A stretch of 64,000 bases of DNA from Magallana gigas (lineage: Eukaryota), in contig NC_088857.1 of the NCBI RefSeq assembly GCF_963853765.1, positions 14,508,001 to 14,572,000 on the forward strand. Direction: 5' to 3'. The notes beneath the pieces are model-generated. The model saw nothing but the letters and a program-made list of their open reading frames with translations, did not search any database and had not been told where the DNA came from. The translations under genes and the position numbers were made by a program. The stretch's first letter is position 1, and every line of letters begins with the position of its first letter. Shown here piece after piece: positions 14,989 through 47,277 of this stretch.

Positions 14989-15764
14989 CTATAATTTAGG
15001 CACCAGCCTTTTTTTCTTCGCCTGCTTTTCAAAAATGGCTGAAGCATGGAAAATAAGTCTGCCATTCAAAAGAATTGAGAACTGGATGTGCTCCGGAGAC
15101 CCAGCTTCGTTCTGCCAAGTGTAGATGGACAGTTCGTCGTTTGCTCTGCTTTCACCCACATAGCTGATGGTCCACAGGAGAGGGGCATATAGACACATGT
15201 CCTCGTTGAAGTGCACGTAGTGACCACTCAAAGACGCATGCGTGGCAGCATCCATGCAGAATTTAATGTACGACGATTGGTTCACGTGGTTGTTTCGATC
15301 CGAGTCACTGTGGCGCGGAATCAAATCGAACTTGAAAGCGTTATCTGGAATTTTTGGCAAAGCGTCTCTGGGCAAAGCTTGTGTTGATCCGTAGGAATTT
15401 CTGTATGAGTCGTATTTTTCGTAGAACCATTCCGGAAACGTGACAGGACGTCTCGTTTTGCGAGACATCCGGACCATTTTAATCAAATTTTCACCATAAA
15501 CCTCCCTAGTGTTGCCATCTTTGAACTCAACAACGAACTGTACCGACGTTTTCCCGACTTCTACTAACCTCAAATCAAACAACATCGTAAATTTCACGTT
15601 CATGCCTTTTTCATGAAGCTTCGGGATTAGTTTCAGTTGTTGTTTGACAATCACCAAAGCCGCTTCCCTACCATCGATTTTCGTAAAGTCTATGAATCCA
15701 TTATACAATGCAAGGATACGGGCTGCTTCGAACATTTTCGATACATACCATATTGCCCAATGAC
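14989..15764 (-). CDS. Double hot-dog acyl-ACP/acyl-CoA thioesterase-like protein, copy 1, exon 2
   Basis: Acceptor TTTTAG|GTCATTGG, open to the stop at 14989. Contains SDSDRNNHVNQSSYIKFCMDA (DxNxHVN) and ISYVGESR (YxxE), matching the catalytic C-terminal hot-dog of FatA/FatB and bacterial acyl-ACP thioesterases. Confidence 0.88.
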
Positions 15765-15881
15765 CTAAAATAAACATGCAAATTTTGGCAAAATGAAAAC
15801 ATTGAAAACATTTCATCATCAAAACAATTGCTTAACACTGAAAAGTTATAACATGTTATTAAAAGCAAATATAAGAAAAAC

Positions 15882-16177
15882 ACACCGTTGCTTTTTTCAA
15901 AATCTTTAAAAACAATTATGTATTTCTTTCATCTAGTAACACTGTGTCGGATAAGTATGCCAGTGCCAAGGTGGAATTTTTGCACCTGCTTAGGATGCAG
16001 TTTTGTAAAAATTCATATACAATAAAAGACACCGTTGCTTTTTTCAAAATCTTTAAAAACAATTATGTATTTCTTTCATCTAGTAACACTGTGTCGGATA
16101 AGTATGCCAGTGCCAAGGTGGAATTTTTGCACCTGCTTAGGATGCAGTTTTGTAAAAATTCATATGCAATAAAAGAC
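15882..16177. repeat. Tandem duplication, 2 x 147 bp, in the intron of thioesterase copy 1
   Basis: ACACCGTTGCTTTTTTCAAAATC... starts at 15882 and 16029; the copies are near-identical. Confidence 0.9.
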
Positions 16178-16794
16178 AGACAATTTTCCCAAGCTTTTAA
16201 GGGTAGATGTCTACTTTCGTTTTTAGTGTTCCCCACCTATAAGGAGAGTTAATTATTTACCTTTAAAACTAGATATCCCAGAGGAAAATAATGATTTCCA
16301 TAAGAGAAATGATTTACCTACACCAAAATCTGAAAATCCCTTAAGATATTCTAAAATCCCTAGAGGAATTATATTTCCTGTAGGATTTAAATATTTCCTG
16401 TAGAAAATCGATTCAGACAGGTAGATTTTAATGTCCTATGAAAGTTTTGTTCAAATCCTATTCGAATTTAAATTCCTATGGAAAGTTCTTTTATTCTGAA
16501 AGGAATTTCCATCTATCCTTTGGCAAAATTGTTTTTCCTATGGGAAAAACAGGTTAGATACAATATTAACAAAGGTGGTTATAACTTCTCAAACAATAGT
16601 CTATCATATGGCATATTTGAATTTTTTAATGCATAAAGCTTGGACGGATACAAAAATGTCACCTTCAATGGCACTGGGATAATTATTCAGCACAGTGTTT
16701 ATTAGTTTTATTCATTTAGAAAGCAGAGTGCACGACATTGAATGTATTGTTTATACAAACAAATTTAAATCATTTAAATGTTATGTAACAGCAC

Positions 16795-21181: not shown

Positions 21182-21957
21182 TTAGATTTTTGATAATGAG
21201 GATGCGACTTTCTTTGCCTCCTTCTCAAAAATGGTTGAGGCATGGAAAATAAGTCTGTCGTTCAAAAGTATTGAAAACTCAATGTGCTCCGGGGACGAAC
21301 TTTCGCTCTGCCACGTGTAGATGGACAGTTCGTCGTTTGCTCTGCATTCACCCACATAGCTGATGGTCCACAGGAGAGGGGCATATAGACACATGTCCTC
21401 GTTGAAGTGCACGTAGTGACCACTCAAAGACGCATGCGTGGCAGCATCCATGCAGAATTTGATGTACGACGATTGGTTCACGTGGTTGTTTCGATCCATA
21501 TCACTATAGTTTGGGACTAGACGGAATTCGAAAGCGTTGTCTGGAATATCTGGCAAAGCAGTTTTGCTTCGAAACTGTTGTTTCTGCGGGCTCTCATGTA
21601 GTTCAAGTGATTTGATGTACCACTCAGGAAATGAAATTGAACGTCTTGTTTTACGACTGAATCTGACAAATTTGAGAAAGGTTTCACCAAGCCTCTCTTT
21701 CGTGGACCCGTCTCTGAGCTCTGTCACATTCGTAATGGACCTTTCTCCGACTTCCAGTAATTTCACATCGAACAACAAATGAGATTGTGGTTTCAGTTTT
21801 ATCTGATGAACTTTGGGATTTAATTTAATCTCTTGTTTAGCGATCACTATAGTTTCGTCTTGGTGATAGATTTTAGCCAAATCCAAAAATCCATTGTACA
21901 AAGCTAAAGCTCTAGATGCCTCAAACATTTTGGAAATACACCATACTGCCCAATGGC
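21182..21957 (-). CDS. Double hot-dog thioesterase-like protein, copy 2, exon 2
   Basis: Acceptor TCTAG|GCCATTGG, 776 nt, colinear with copy 1. Contains SDMDRNNHVNQSSY and ISYVGECR. Confidence 0.88.
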
Positions 21958-39418: not shown

Positions 39419-40240
39419 ATTCCCTTACTAAAGAAATCAATTGTTTACTTAAATAAATCGGTATAAAGTGCAGATTACGGAGGGAGTGAATAAGAACAGC
39501 TGTTTATAAAACCGGTTTAAACTGTAAAAATGTCTAAAATCATTAAAGACTCAGTATAAAATTTCATAAACAAAATACCATAAATTGTTGTACGCACAGT
39601 CCTTTATAGATCTAAATAGATTGAGTGGGGGGATAATTAGAAGGAAAACTGTTTGATAGTGATGATGAATGTTAGAAGCGGAATTACGTAAGACACATCC
39701 CATCCTCTGTATCCGTCACGTTCACACAGTTCCGCCTCACGTTCTCGCGCCATTGCGTCAGTGACCTTCACAGAAGCTACGTGATTTGTTATTGTATGGC
39801 GACCCTGTCGGGACACAATTCCATTGCAGCGAGGAATTAAAAGTCGCTTGTTCTGCTTGATTTCTCAGAATATCTACATAGTTATACAATAAATATGAAG
39901 ACTACATATTTAAATTACAATAACCTATGATTGCACGTGGAGTTTGATTCAAGAATAATGTTATTTAAAGCACAGTGTAAAGAATCGAATCTTAAAAATA
40001 TTTTTGCCCCGTTTGACCTACTGCAGGGTACATTGTAATTATAAACAGTGCGATCTCGTCACGTTCCTCTGCTAAGCGCCTTACAACCGGTATATATATA
40101 TTTGCTATGCCTTACACATTGACTGGTATTTTGAATTTGTCTTGGAAGTGTTTACAATCCAACCTTTTTTAATTCAGGGAGAAAAATTCTACCATATATT
40201 TTGAACATTGTTCAGGACAGATGAGAATTTAACTTCAAAT

Positions 40241-41327
40241 ATGATAGGCCTTTTGATTAAAAATCCAGCGCTTCTGACAAGTGTGTTTTCGGCCGTTCTT
40301 CTACAGAATGGGATTCGTATGTCTACATGTGCCTTGAATTCAAAATTCAGTCATGAAACTGGTACAGTTATTTCTCGAAGCCCACCCGGATTGAACTCGG
40401 GGCTGAAGCTTTGGTGGGCAAAGCAAGTCACCCCTGAATATTACGTGGCGGGAAGACTGAGCAGACGACAGTTACAATACGCGGCCGAAGGAGGCTTTAA
40501 AAGTGTTGTTTCTTTATTTACATACGAGAACGACAAAGACTGCTGTTTTGGGATGGACTATTTACCCGCAACATCCAAAATGGCTACGATTGCCAAAGAC
40601 TCTGGACTTCAGTTTAGAACCGTGATGGATTCGGCGGGGACCTTGACATCTTCCGCCGATTCCGTTTCACAACTAAAACAGGCACTGAACAATATCCCCA
40701 CTCCCGTACTTGTGCTTTCAGACCGGGGCTACAGTGCAACATTTACTTTGTTTATGTATTTATTAAATTATGACAAGAATTTTACGATGGACAGAGCTGC
40801 TGCTATAAGTCATGTGTTGGGAATGGACTTGAGTATGAAATGTATCAATCAGAAACTGTGTAAGGTAACCGGAGAAAATGTCGAGTTTTCTAAGTTAGAT
40901 AAATTACCAAAGCAGTGGCTGAATTACTGGCATGCTATACCCGTATATAAGAATTGGTTTGTGGCAGGGCAAATTTTGGAATCACATATTCCTCGCATCA
41001 TGCAAGCTGGGTTCAAATCCGTTGTGAACCTTCGAGCTGGTACAACCCACAAGGGGAAACCAGCACAAGAAAAAGTTACACTGATGAATATTGCGGACAA
41101 TTCTAAGACCTATGGTGATGAGAATTTAGGTCCCAGACAGAGTATAGACGCGTTAAAACAAAAGATTCTTGATCCCCTTAAAGAGAACTCATATGTATCC
41201 CCGAATTCATCACACAATTTCGCCACGTCCAATCCAGAAGAATTCGGAGATCTCATTGGTTATAACGAAGATCTTGAAAAACTCGCCTTTCGTAAAGCAG
41301 GGTTCCCTTATTATCACTTACCAGTTG
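40241..41327 (+). CDS. Tandem DUF442/BLH phosphatase-like (rhodanese-type) domain protein, exon 1
   Basis: Two repeats: YYVAGRL...AEGGFKSVVSL...GLQF...PVLVLSDRGYSA and WFVAGQI...QAGFKSVVNLR...AGFPYYHLPV, matching the DUF442 pattern sGQi...GfktiINlR...Gl.Y.hiPv...PVlxyCxSGxR. Donor G|GTAGGT. ATG 40241 is the first in-frame ATG. Confidence 0.85.
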
Positions 41328-41395
41328 GTAGGTATTAAAATCCAATACACATTATGGGAGAAATGAAGTGAAATCTGTTATATATTCAAGCGTTG

Positions 41396-42362: not shown

Positions 42363-43617
42363 TGGAGAGGATTTGAATTATTTTTACACCTGATATAGAA
42401 TCTCATTATATTAGTACTGTGCAACTAGTCATTGGAATTTTTCCAAGTAAAATGACATGATTCATTCATTTTTAAGGATTTTTTGGGCATTATGATTTCT
42501 CCGAGGTTTAGGGGGTGGGGCGCGTTGAAGGGTTTTGTTGGCGTGGAGGGAAAGGAGAGGTCGTCGAATAAATCAATTATAACCTCGAAGAAATGTTTGT
42601 GTAGCTCCAATAGAATTTATGTAATGCTTTATTGCTTTATGATTTACTCGTGTATAAATGATTTTGTAGTTTTTTAATGTTCCATTTTTGATACTTGTCA
42701 AATGCAAGTTGAGATCTCAAAGGAAAATATACTTTACCTCGGTGTTTTGTAAATTATGTTTACTTTTTTTTCTACAGAGTTGTGGCTCCTATGTTCAATA
42801 TCAATTTATTTTTTCAATAAAAGAAATCAGTTTTATCTTTTTTTTATGTTTGTTATAAATGTAGTCTTTCATGCACTATTTAAGATTGTTTAGATGAGGA
42901 AAAGGTTAAGAAGGTTTTCATGTACACATTTTTTTAAAGGTAACCAATTTGATTACTTCTGCTAATAATAACATTTTATAACAATTTTAGTGCTGACATT
43001 CCATCACTTTATAAAAGAATTTTTAAAAATCAAAGGACTCCAAGTCATGCAAAACAAAGATTTAATCTAAACTACAACATAAAAAACACATATACACATC
43101 TTGATAGATTCTTTGATTTGTCAACAGCAACTGGGAAATCGCTGAAAAAAATGGAGACATTAGTTTTGAAATTATCAAGAAGCAAGTCTTTTGTGTATTT
43201 CTTATTTTTTTTCTTTCTTATAGATTTGATTTATTAAAGATCAATACATGTATTTTAAACTGGGAATACATGTATTTCCCTAAATACAATTTGTTGATTC
43301 AGTAAAATTTTGTTTCACATAGCTGTTTAAATACGTGGCCTGTAACAAGCAGTCTAAAATGTCTTTATCATTTTATGATAAAGTTAGATTTACACCCCTT
43401 TAGGACAGATCTAAGTTATAACAAAAGGCGCATTTGGTTATAGTACTTTATCCCTAAAACCAATCTAAACTCTCAATCCCTTAAATTAATGGAAAGTGGA
43501 ACATATATGATCTGACTTAAAATAACCCATGCACATGTTAACTATATATTTCCAATAGTACTAAATTATTCTAAAAAGCACATGTAGAACATAATCTATT
43601 CACGACTGACCGGCGAT

Positions 43618-43841
43618 CTAGGAGATGACTATTTGATAGGCCGCCATGCACCAGGCGCAGCAGTTCTGGTTGTAGTAGTTGGTCATACAGCGAGACAACC
43701 AGTGACCAGTTGTGTGTGAGTCACAGTCAGTCACACGATTCTCGCATTCCTGGCGACGATCGAAGCTCTTGGCAGCGCTGATAAGTTCATGGATCTTGTT
43801 GCGGAGCATGTCGTATTGTCTACGTTCCTTCTCATCCAGAT
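43618..43841 (-). CDS. Secreted 6-Cys PLAC/ShK-like peptide precursor, exon 2
   Basis: Acceptor CTATCAG|. Encodes DLDEKERRQYDMLRNKIHELISAAKSFDRRQECENRVTDCDSHTTGHWLSRCMTNYYNQNCCAWCMAAYQIVIS*, with pattern C-x6-C-x11-C-x8-CC-x2-C. Confidence 0.8.
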
Positions 43842-44303
43842 CTGATAGTATTGGAAACGTTTGTTTGTGATTGAACATTTTTATTATGATTTATTCATTT
43901 GAAAATATATTTTGGTCATTTGAGGAAGTTCCTCTGATATGATGATATCATAATATTCACAGTCCCGCACCCATTGAACAGTGGTTAGAACTAATTGTGT
44001 CAGCAACAACTTACTTAATTTAGATTACTTTACGTCATATAGTTCCAAAAAGGAAGTATCTTATCTTTCAAAAATTTTCAATTATTTATTTCTTTTTTTA
44101 TGGGTGTTTGCCCAAAAGATGGCTTCAGAAAATTTTGCATGTCAATTATCTAGCAGTAGATCTAATTTAGCGGTCAGTGAAGAAGTTTTAGGAGCTGTCA
44201 ATATATATACCTGCCCGGGGATCGAATTCCGGGCAAGTAATTAAATACATAAGCTTATATAAAATAAAAATCACTAAATGGATGACAAAACAAATATTAT
44301 TAC

Positions 44304-44379
44304 CTTCTGCAGACGACGAGACGTCATAAAACTGAAGCACCAGACAGAAGGCCATGATAAACATCGAAACTTTCTCCAT
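44304..44379 (-). CDS. Secreted 6-Cys peptide precursor, exon 1 (signal peptide)
   Basis: MEKVSMFIMAFCLVLQFYDVSSSAE plus G, donor G|GTAATA. 76+224 nt gives 99 aa in frame. TATATTAA at 44439-44446 upstream. Confidence 0.8.
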
Positions 44380-45263
44380 CTCGACACTCCTCTCTTGTTC
44401 CGGTCAATTCGCGGTATAACCGGGACGTGAAAACGCTGTTAATATATCGTGAGAATTTATGGTCAATTTATTCTATATTTTACCCGGGGAATTTTTTATT
44501 CTAATTTGAAGATATTTTTCTATACCACCTTGGTTTATAAGTGGCCTCATTGGGATCGGACAGTACCTTATCAAGTACCCCCATCTTATAATAATAATGT
44601 ACCCTGTAGCGGTAATAGTGGTAATAAAGGTCCAACGCACTCGGAAATTTTCTTTTTTCAAACTAGTAAACACTGTCAGAGTTTTACAGATACACTGTAT
44701 ATTTTTGGAGGAGTAGGTTAAAGAAATCTACATGATTTGATGGGTTGGTGGGGGGTTGAATTTATACTTTAAAATTCATAGATACATAAAGTGTAATTAT
44801 AAATCTATATCAGATTTAAACTCGTGAACTTCGGTTTAGCAGTTTAGTTCTAAGCGATGTTATATTACGTCTTACATTGACATCGTCGCTCTAAATTCAG
44901 ATTAAAATTTGAGAATTATTTGCTTCTCATTATTGATAATATTCTCAGCAACATGAAGGAATGTAAAAACTGTTTGTCAAATACATCTCAAGAAGAAAAC
45001 AAACACCTAAAAATATCAGACATTATTCATTTATCTCATCAATGCCACTTTTATAGTATTAGTATTCATCATATGTTTGTACAGACCACGTTATACGATC
45101 GTACATATATGGTTTTGTATCTTTTAATTTCAGTAGAAAAACAATAAAAAGATTGATTTATAGATTGCAACTCATTTTCAACTCGAAAATTACTTCATTA
45201 ATTATGAAAACCAACGTCTTTTACAGAAAAATAGGTCGATTTTCAATATACACCGGTACTTCT

Positions 45264-45538
45264 CAGGCACGTAGCATCGGGAGGGGGGGGGGGCAGGGGG
45301 GGGGCTGCCCCCCCCCCCCACTTTTTCTCGCAGCAACCAATTTTTTAAAATTTACATATAAAAAATTGAATTATCATGGAGTCCCCCCCCCCCTTTTTTT
45401 GGGAGTATGTAAAAAACGATATGAAAATAAGGAAATAAGGAGTGAAATTGAAGTTATATTTTTTGCTTGTCAAGATTTTTTTGGATGAGTCTGCCCCCCC
45501 CCCCCCCCCCCACTTTCAAAAACGATGCTACGTGCCTG
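45264..45538. mobile_element. MITE with CAGGCACGTAGCATC termini, copy 2 (opposite orientation)
   Basis: Same TIRs and same subterminal block (TTTTTGAAAGTGGG...GCAGACTCATCCAAAAA) as 41869-42072, reverse-complemented. Confidence 0.75.
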
Positions 45539-45560
45539 CCTCTTACTGAAAGTGGTGAAA

Positions 45561-45879
45561 TAAGGAATAATTCTTTGAGAATTATGAAGATGATAATTTT
45601 GGTCGGGGCGTGATCAAATCCAATAAAGCCCGAAGGGCTTCATGATAGATTTGATCATGCCCCGACCGAAATTACCACCTCATAATATTTAAAGAATGAT
45701 TCCTTATTACTTATATTTATATAACTTTCAGCCATCCTACGATTAAATATTTAAATATAGATAAGCAAACCCCGCTGGCGCCTCAATTTGGCGTCATTTG
45801 TATTATGGGTTATATAGTACAAAATCGATACATACATGTAGTGTTATCACAGGCAAAGACACTGGAAAATGTAAATATA
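45561..45879 (+). mobile_element. Non-autonomous palindromic element, copy 2
   Basis: Near-identical to 11954-12261, including the GCCCGAAGGGC centre and the tail GCAAACCCCGCTGGCGCCTCAATTTGGCGTC. Confidence 0.8.
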
Positions 45880-46280
45880 TAAAAAATAATGGTTCTAGAA
45901 AGTGTACGTGTGGTTAACGTTTACCTGAGGATGATCATTTGCATACCAAGCTAGATACATGTACTTATTCACTCTTTAACAGATGTTCAACACTAAAAAT
46001 GGGTTGCATTCTTCGTCGGCGGTTCATTAATTAGGTTAACTAACCTTGATAACCTTACGTATTCTCTTTATTTGTTCGTTGATTCATGTCTCATATAAGT
46101 ATCTAGTCAAAACTTTTCTTTTTTCAAGTGTTGATCGAACTAGTTCTTTTTTTATCATATTGCGTCGTACATGTACGTATATACATATATTTCATGATGT
46201 CATGACAAGGTGGGTTTTTCATTAGTTATTTTAAAGTGTTCTACCCGATGTCAATTTTGCATTGTGCGTGCATTTTTCTT

Positions 46281-47277
46281 TAGAACCATTTTAACAAGAC
46301 CTTGGACTTTCAGAAGGATGTAACCATCTTTTTCCTACGTCAAAACAAGTTAAAATGACGCCGGTTTCAGGTGGAATATATATTGGCATATCTCTGCCCC
46401 TTGTGTGCAAGTTATTTTTCTATCAAATATGTCGACACGCAAGCTAAATATGTTGACATGCAAGATAATTATGTCAACATGCAACATAACTATGTTGACA
46501 TGCAAGAAAATTGCAACCAGACAAGAATTATACAAAATCTCAAAAAATCTCAAATATCGCCCACCTGTGACATCCAAGATGCTAGATGCTACCTTTTTAT
46601 GTCGACATACAACTTATTTATGTTAACATGCAAGATAAATATGCTTACATGCAACTTATTTATGTCAACATGCAACTTATTTATGTCGACATGCAACTTA
46701 TTTATGTCAACATGCAACTTACTAATGTTGACATGCGAGATAAATATGTTGACATGCAACTTATAAGTTGTATGTCAACATAAATAAGTTGCATGTCGAC
46801 ATAGATATGTTGCATGTCGACATAGATATGTTGCATGTTAAAATAACTAAGTTGCATGTCGACATAAATAAGTTGCATGTCAACATAAAGAAGTTGCATT
46901 TTAAGATAAACAAGTTGCATGTTGACATCAATAGGTAGCGTATCTAGCATCTTGGATGTCACATGTTGGCGATATTTGAGAATTTTTATAACTCTTATTT
47001 GATTGCAGTTTTCTTGCATGTCAACATAGTTATGTTGCATGTTGACATAACTATTTTGCATGTCAACATCTTTATCTTGCTTGTCGACATAATTAATAGA
47101 AAAATAACTTGCACACAAGGGGCAGAGATATGCCACCATAGAAATATACACAGATTGCGTAGTCTTAGCTTTCAAAGGGCCATGACTGAGTGGCCAGCAT
47201 TGAAATAGACAGGCATACGTCACATTGCTGTTTGACACAACTACCCAAAGTCCAAGCTCCTGTTAAAATGGTTCTGA
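46281..47277. mobile_element. Composite: about 250-bp TIR element interrupted by a 760-bp foldback element (46381-47140) carrying internal GTTGACATGCAA repeats
   Basis: Outer TIRs AGAACCATTTTAACAAGACCTTGGACTTT / AAAGTCCAAGCTCCTGTTAAAATGGTTCT. Inner long TIRs begin TGGCATATCTCTGCCCCTTGTGTGCAAG. An uninterrupted outer element lies at 57056-57303. Confidence 0.85.

Follow-up and report, generated by a model that had tools for sequence, protein, structure and literature searches.

The ShKT domain is defined by six conserved cysteines within 36-42 amino acids (aa) (PMC4460706). In the snail Cumia reticulata it is found in single-ShKT secreted proteins of 64-99 aa, which consist of a signal peptide, a linker and the ShKT domain (PMC6409789, PMC4460706). 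Magallana gigas, the Pacific oyster, has nearly 50 ShKT-domain genes, and single-domain ShK-like genes have been stated to be absent from mollusc genomes other than that of Cumia, with the exception of one Biomphalaria protein (PMC6409789). Among cnidarians, ShK-like peptides, including a Nematostella neuropeptide/toxin pair, are placed in the nervous and venom systems by the abstract of one report (bioRxiv 10.1101/2020.05.28.121442). PLAC, a second module with six cysteines, spans ~40 aa and is located C-terminally in extracellular proteins (PMC8221789). Here we describe a locus that resembles each of these in part. It lies on the minus strand of a 64,000-nucleotide (nt) stretch of M. gigas DNA (contig NC_088857.1, positions 14,508,001 to 14,572,000, hereafter the window; G+C 33%), where its coding parts occupy 44379-43618. 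We find that it is a real, independent, expressed and spliced Pacific-oyster gene for a 99-aa predicted secretory precursor. Our preferred reading of the product, in which we place roughly even confidence, is a secreted peptide of ShKT/PLAC-like type that stands alone, is confined to one lineage and probably serves as an extracellular ligand or modulator.

The start codon is at 44379 (context GAGATGG), and the coding part of exon 1 (44379-44304, 76 nt) supplies residues 1-25, with a signal-peptide-like N-terminus, and the first base of codon 26. A phase-1 GT-AG intron of 462 nt follows (intron 1, 44303-43842), which opens with GTAATA, closes with a pyrimidine-rich run and TATCAG, and is positioned two residues beyond the region where the signal peptide is likely to be cleaved. 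As read from the sequence, exon 2 contributes 224 coding nt including the stop (43841-43618). Its first part (43841-43753, residues 26-55) encodes a charged linker or pro-region, predicted to be helical, with two RR-Q sites; its second part (43752-43621, residues 56-99) encodes a 44-aa domain with the cysteine array C-x6-C-x11-C-x8-CC-x2-C, and the frame is closed by TAG at 43620-43618. Joined unedited, the two exons yield a 300-nt frame of 99 aa. Seven C. gigas-type Logan contigs from seven sequencing runs (L001-L004 and L006-L008) are spliced at exactly 44304|43841, and an eighth intron-less contig from an eighth run, L005, shows the identical junction in a copy that is ~6% diverged in nucleotides. 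Thus, the two coding exons and the 99-aa product that the first-pass annotation had predicted are borne out at the exact junction by eight cDNA-type contigs, and its reservation that a spliced transcript might not exist no longer applies. Intron 1 is retained, with conserved GT and AG ends, in the genomic-type contigs L009-L013, which represent diverged haplotypes or sister species (90-97% overall identity) and preserve the ATG, the two splice sites and the frame in full. The intron-containing form is present on more than 400 contigs, where it is called as an 86-aa open reading frame (ORF) starting within the intron, whereas each intron-less 99-aa variant is present on only one or two. This is the pattern of DNA versus RNA libraries, and a processed retrocopy in the genome is therefore rejected as the source of the intron-less contigs.

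An alternative N-terminus, the 128-aa P0016 read from L005 (SRR8427117), was also considered and rejected. L005 is a chimeric assembly: nt 1-348 and 680-919 (~240 nt) have no counterpart in the window, its last part encodes an RPL24e-like N-terminus, and only the middle, which holds the orthologue, is informative. P0016 is no real isoform.

Could the frame be no independent gene at all, but the last exon of some larger gene, a fragment turned pseudogene, or an ORF that arose by chance? An in-frame stop lies nine codons upstream of the ATG and the leader is closed in all three frames; the contigs reach 155-578 nt beyond the ATG on its upstream side and remain colinear with the genome over this distance, and in none of them is there an upstream spliced exon. 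Since the leader carries stops in all frames, the gene is not the terminal piece of some larger one, a possibility that had been raised when the locus was first annotated. A phmmer search with the 99-aa protein, run without a length limit against 1.84 billion representatives, returned the protein's own cluster and two fragment/variant clusters, and thus neither a larger relative or fusion nor any other relative. The leader itself is unusual. Its minimum extent, from contigs L001-L004 and L006-L008, is 44948-44380; it is non-coding, highly polymorphic and contains up to 8 upstream ATGs. The TATA-like motif TATATTAA, reported in the first-pass annotation as a TATA-like box, does exist at 44446-44439, 60 nt upstream of the ATG; its promoter role is unconfirmed, as the seven transcript contigs begin at 44530 to 44948, all upstream of it. 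Lying inside assembled transcripts, TATATTAA is therefore unproven as a promoter and is a candidate only, and TATAAAA at 45055-45049 on the same strand is an alternative candidate. The long leader rich in upstream ATGs and the TATA-like motif within the transcribed region would fit the absence of an independent gene, as would an exon-2 allele, P0002, that is broken by a single frameshift. This allele was seen on one 3420-nt genomic Logan contig, once among several hundred, and could be either a null allele of low frequency or an artefact of assembly.

Variation at the locus speaks against such an interpretation. The ORF is intact in 12 variant classes, of which the listed genomic classes alone are found on more than 400 contigs, and the splice sites are conserved in the diverged copies. 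Compared with the most diverged copy, the coding sequence (CDS) shows 10 synonymous and 4 non-synonymous differences, a ratio of non-synonymous to synonymous change (pN/pS) of ~0.10; eight CDS of the C. gigas type vary among themselves at 6 synonymous and 4 non-synonymous segregating sites. In an alignment of 12 protein variants the six cysteines and both RR-Q sites are invariant, as are 35 of the 44 C-terminal residues. The gene is under purifying selection. A pN/pS of ~0.1, together with an ORF left intact across 12 variant classes, shows it to be no pseudogene, which had been the remaining concern of the first-pass annotation. Identity of the transcript contigs to the window is 88-96% in the leader, which carries several indels among them, 98-99% in the CDS and 99-100% in the 3' untranslated region (UTR; 43113-43617), where it was taken over 300-500 nt and is tighter than in the CDS. 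L009 and L010 differ from the window at 9 of 223 positions in exon 2 and at 5 of 461 in the intron. Taken with seven contigs that are colinear upstream, show stops in all frames and have no further splice, these data largely refute the view that there is no independent gene, and we regard it as very improbable.

The exact 99-aa protein is already present in public data (P0014). A second variant, P0003, in which 98 of 99 residues match, is UniRef100_K1REG3 of Magallana gigas, named 'ShKT domain-containing protein', a name that probably derives from an automatic profile match. Hence the gene model is in the databases, uncharacterised, and annotation did not miss it, contrary to the earlier remark that such a gene is easily missed. 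In a word-based homologue search the 73-aa exon-2 piece returned its own cluster alone and the 44-aa domain gave no candidate. Full-text literature searches by accession, run numbers, sequence fragments and protein name revealed no paper on this gene. Likewise, two searched fragments are absent from an oyster visceral-ganglia neuropeptide survey (PMC8398477), and the 'cysteine-rich' passages shown from it contain no such precursor. The gene encodes an uncharacterised small secreted six-cysteine peptide and is not a new kind of system.

The precursor layout that the first-pass annotation had read, a secretory precursor from a stand-alone gene with a six-cysteine array ending in CC-x2-C, is recovered from the sequence. 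A hydrophobic core at residues 5-15 (mean Kyte-Doolittle 2.65) followed by S-S-S-A fits a signal peptide. Dibasic pairs at residues 32-33 and 54-55 form the RR-Q sites at 32-34 and 54-56, so that a conserved dibasic site ahead of the cysteine-rich part is present in all 12 variants, its use being predicted. The first site reads K-E-R-R, with a basic residue at P4, and the second F-D-R-R, without one. A basic P4 favours furin-type cleavage by convertases, and K-E-R-R is at least as good a site as F-D-R-R. Since the two RR sites are equally conserved, cleavage at the second is only one of two options. The C-terminal stretch after DRR is identical to the 44-aa six-cysteine peptide originally proposed as the mature form; that 'mature peptide' is only one of several possible products of 75, 66 or 44 aa. 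Within it the cysteine spacings are 6, 11, 8, 0 and 2, C1 to C6 fall within 33 residues, and the array finishes 9 residues before the C-terminus. The 44-aa form has a pI of 5.31, a charge of -2.1 at pH 7, no Lys and two Arg, while the charge of the 66-aa form is ~0. Modelled by AlphaFold (AF2) with no informative alignment, the full precursor (pLDDT 47.6) shows a helix at residues 29-48, predicted with low confidence, and the 44-aa domain, modelled from its single sequence (pLDDT 59.5), shows helices at domain residues 17-24 and 29-42.

To which family does the domain belong? The first-pass annotation stated that its spacing matches the PLAC domain, and this finds no profile support: a Pfam-A hmmscan of the 73-aa exon-2 product and of the 44-aa domain returned no family at E<=10, hence neither PLAC (PF08686) nor ShK (PF01549), and an NCBIfam scan gave no match. 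Sequence searches of the PDB, with a single sequence and with a 12-sequence profile, gave chance-level matches only (E 0.1-1.6; DUSP4, a cyclin, GINS and an envelope protein) and no ShK-type chain. A Foldseek search of the PDB with the low-confidence AF2 model of the 44-aa domain returned no match at E<=10, so that the structural comparison that had been suggested did not place it either. The cysteines themselves give a mixed picture. Six cysteines within 33 residues, invariant in 12 variants, agree with the short six-cysteine domain by which ShKT is defined. ShKT domains end in C4-x3-C5-x2-C6, and the ShK fold is bridged by disulfides C1-C6, C2-C4 and C3-C5; here C4 and C5 are adjacent. An ending in which C4 directly precedes C5 and x2-C comes next is that of PLAC, and the longer C2-C3 loop brings the domain closer to ShKT. 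That the six-cysteine region is C-terminal in a protein whose N-terminus resembles a signal peptide agrees with the general definition of PLAC; the large multidomain context of that module is missing from a stand-alone protein of 99 aa with no upstream coding exon. What points to family membership is thus the cysteine array and the UniProt name only, and the domain is most aptly called ShKT/PLAC-like by cysteine array, which does not make it a proven member of either family.

The layout of signal peptide, pro-region and disulfide-rich C-terminus would suit a host-defence, antimicrobial peptide, one of the functions first proposed for the locus. Its restriction to one lineage, as seen in many bivalve defence peptides (PMC4558851), would agree with this, and the fact that it is seldom assembled in RNA-seq runs would fit inducible or tissue-restricted expression. 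The MgCRP-I peptides of Mytilus offer a direct comparison: they too are bivalve pre-pro-mature precursors with a dibasic site and six cysteines (PMC4558851), their phase-1 intron likewise interrupts or follows the signal peptide, and their last exon carries the whole mature peptide together with the 3' UTR. However, the MgCRP-I array is C-C-CC-C-C and that of the oyster gene C-C-C-CC-C, which places the latter outside MgCRP-I. Furthermore, MgCRP-I forms a large family in which the mature region is hypervariable and under positive selection (PMC4558851), whereas the oyster gene is conserved, under purifying rather than diversifying selection, and single-copy, with no paralogue detected in the 64-kb window by tblastn and a six-frame cysteine-pattern scan, so the paralogue search that had been proposed found none there. 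The putative mature peptide, moreover, is anionic (charge -2, pI 5.3) and not amphipathic-cationic; the net positive charge typical of cationic antimicrobial peptides is absent. We therefore consider an antimicrobial role unlikely.

A role as an ShK-type toxin or deterrent that blocks ion channels, the other function first proposed, meets a similar difficulty. The name 'ShKT domain-containing' is in its favour, and stand-alone ShKT peptides of sea anemones and of Cumia have been linked to channel blockade (PMC6409789). ShK-type K+-channel blockers use a Lys-Tyr functional dyad (PMC6409789), and the 44-aa domain, containing no Lys at all, cannot form one. The C4-C5 spacing is unlike the ShKT type and the Pfam ShK model does not match. 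To our knowledge oysters are filter feeders without a venom apparatus, which we also count against a toxin. Among known proteins the ShK-like (ShKL) proteins of the vampire snail Cumia (Colubraria) reticulata are the closest analogues in layout, being mollusc precursors of 64-99 aa with a signal peptide of ~22 aa, a linker, a six-cysteine domain and a short tail. Like the oyster gene they are lineage-specific and mostly lack the Lys-Tyr dyad. They differ in having a canonical, profile-recognisable ShKT motif, a proline-rich low-complexity linker and massive salivary-gland expression of a family of 14-19 genes, whereas the oyster gene is present in one copy, carries RR sites in a charged helical linker, has C4 next to C5, and does not match the Pfam ShK model, which explains why it would go unlisted in ShKT surveys. 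Cnidarian ShK-type precursors comprise a signal peptide, a pro-region and a basic cleavage site, and their peptides, like that of the oyster, stand alone and have six cysteines; there is no detectable sequence similarity between the two, and the oyster peptide has another C4-C5 spacing, is anionic and is devoid of Lys. A channel-blocking toxin thus appears quite improbable.

The likeness to PLAC leads to the main rival of our reading, namely that the product is not cleaved and that the 75-aa form is a small extracellular-matrix, mantle or shell-associated protein in which the helical part and the PLAC-like module act together. PLAC (PF08686) is found in ADAMTS/ADAMTSL, papilin/lacunin, PACE4/PC5 and C. 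elegans DYF-4, where, as here, ~40 aa with six cysteines form the extreme C-terminal part of a secreted protein (PMC8221789). A CC-x2-C array at the very C-terminus of an extracellular protein is in the PLAC position (PMC8221789), and the linker is predicted to be helical, not disordered. The product is acidic, as are many matrix proteins, and the second RR site, which lacks a basic P4, is a weak furin-type site. The terminal CC-x2-C is common to PLAC and the oyster domain, and the C2-C3 loop is longer in the oyster domain than in PLAC. PLAC is the tail of large multidomain proteins, whereas in the oyster it would be almost the whole protein. Both RR sites and the Gln that follows them are invariant, which fits processing and speaks against an uncleaved product, and the Pfam PLAC model does not match. 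Such a matrix-type protein is somewhat improbable in our judgement.

According to the reading we prefer, that of a secreted ShKT/PLAC-like peptide, the signal peptide would be removed around residue 23/24 to give a secreted product of ~75 aa, whose C-terminal domain would fold oxidatively with three disulfides. A proprotein convertase might then cut after one or both RR sites, giving a 66-aa or a 44-aa peptide with an N-terminal Gln. Outside the cell the product would serve as a binding module, acting as ligand or modulator on a receptor, a channel or a matrix partner. We favour such a role because the domain is anionic and has no Lys; elsewhere, ShKT and PLAC modules work in this way. For example, the PLAC module of secreted DYF-4 is required for the action of DYF-4 in the DAF-6 (patched-related) pathway (PMC8221789). 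Judged from its composition, the peptide is less likely to be a membrane-active cationic antimicrobial or a Lys-dyad blocker of the K+-channel pore than a binding module, and the two functions first proposed for the locus are weakened accordingly by a net charge of -2, a pI of 5.3 and zero Lys. Several points weigh against our reading. Neither profiles nor structures link the domain to a family, and the confidence of both AF2 models is low. Among 1.84 billion representatives and in two word-based searches no relative is found outside the protein's own cluster, so no function is transferable by homology. ShKT proteins that lack the dyad can still have channel activity (PMC6409789). Finally, an mRNA from which a peptide is efficiently translated would not be expected to have so long a leader, with as many as 8 upstream ATGs.

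Downstream of the coding region the transcript is less simple than the two-exon model suggests. The 3' UTR is at least 400-500 nt long and reaches ~43213 at least, with two contigs carrying it further, to 43177 and 43113. AATAAA is found at 43235-43230, and L003 stops ~20 nt after it. A segment of 468 nt (43610-43143), which begins 7 nt past the stop, starts with GT, ends with a T-run and CAG and includes this AATAAA, is present in L001, L003, L004 and L010 and lacking in L005 and L009. Two explanations are available, an optional 3'-UTR intron and an indel polymorphism; neither accounts neatly for L009, which has intron 1 but not the segment. In L005 and L009 the non-coding stretch at 43142-43024, which contains ATTAAA at 43066-43061, is joined directly to the stop-proximal sequence and is possibly a non-coding third exon or an extended 3' UTR. 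Therefore, the description of the gene as two-exon holds for its coding part and is possibly incomplete for its non-coding part, given the 468-nt segment that is absent from two contigs.

A 21-nt satellite forms arrays in both orientations at 46425-47095, ~2 kb upstream of the peptide gene, and the ORFs at 46371-47238 are artefacts of this satellite. The diverged contig L011 has no aligned counterpart of 46286-47276, which holds most of the satellite arrays, or of ~630 nt at 45252-45881; the upstream intergenic region is therefore structurally variable. Two long open frames on the plus strand, 40208-41338 (376 aa) and 36754-37740 (328 aa), are mutually unrelated. The former shows sub-threshold similarity to a phosphatase-like/sulfur-transferase domain (Pfam BLH_phosphatase, NCBIfam TIGR01244) and has no PDB relative, and the latter has a sub-threshold DUF3850 match alone. 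On the minus strand, the uninterrupted ORFs 14989-15822 (277 aa) and 21182-21928 (248 aa) are 65% identical over 241 aa, and each matches two Pfam models for hotdog-fold thioesterases, 4HBT_2 and Acyl-ACP_TE_C; they appear to be thioesterase-like genes arranged in tandem. Next to the first of them is a 147-nt repeat in 2.1 copies (15877-16178). The window contains three runs of N (782-931, 1330-1474 and 10831-10958), and no tRNA gene and no Rfam family at gathering score was detected over its whole length.

The small secreted cysteine-rich peptides of bivalves are a rich and poorly charted set, and for this set the locus provides a clean, transcript-backed gene model of practical value for oyster annotation. 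If its domain is truly of the ShKT type, the gene would be a modest exception to the stated absence of single-domain genes. More tentatively, and on balance doubtfully, we may be looking at a stand-alone ShK/PLAC-type gene that is restricted to Magallana and combines ShKT-like loops with a PLAC-like CC-x2-C in one hybrid array, a counter-example to the statement in PMC6409789, and its product could be an independently evolved, hormone-like or modulatory bivalve disulfide peptide. Should the protein prove to be a ShKT/PLAC module on its own, the very narrow known range of single-domain ShK-like proteins, now comprising sea anemones, nematodes and one snail lineage, would extend to oysters, and the gene would connect the ShKT and PLAC cysteine arrays in one compact, naturally occurring example.

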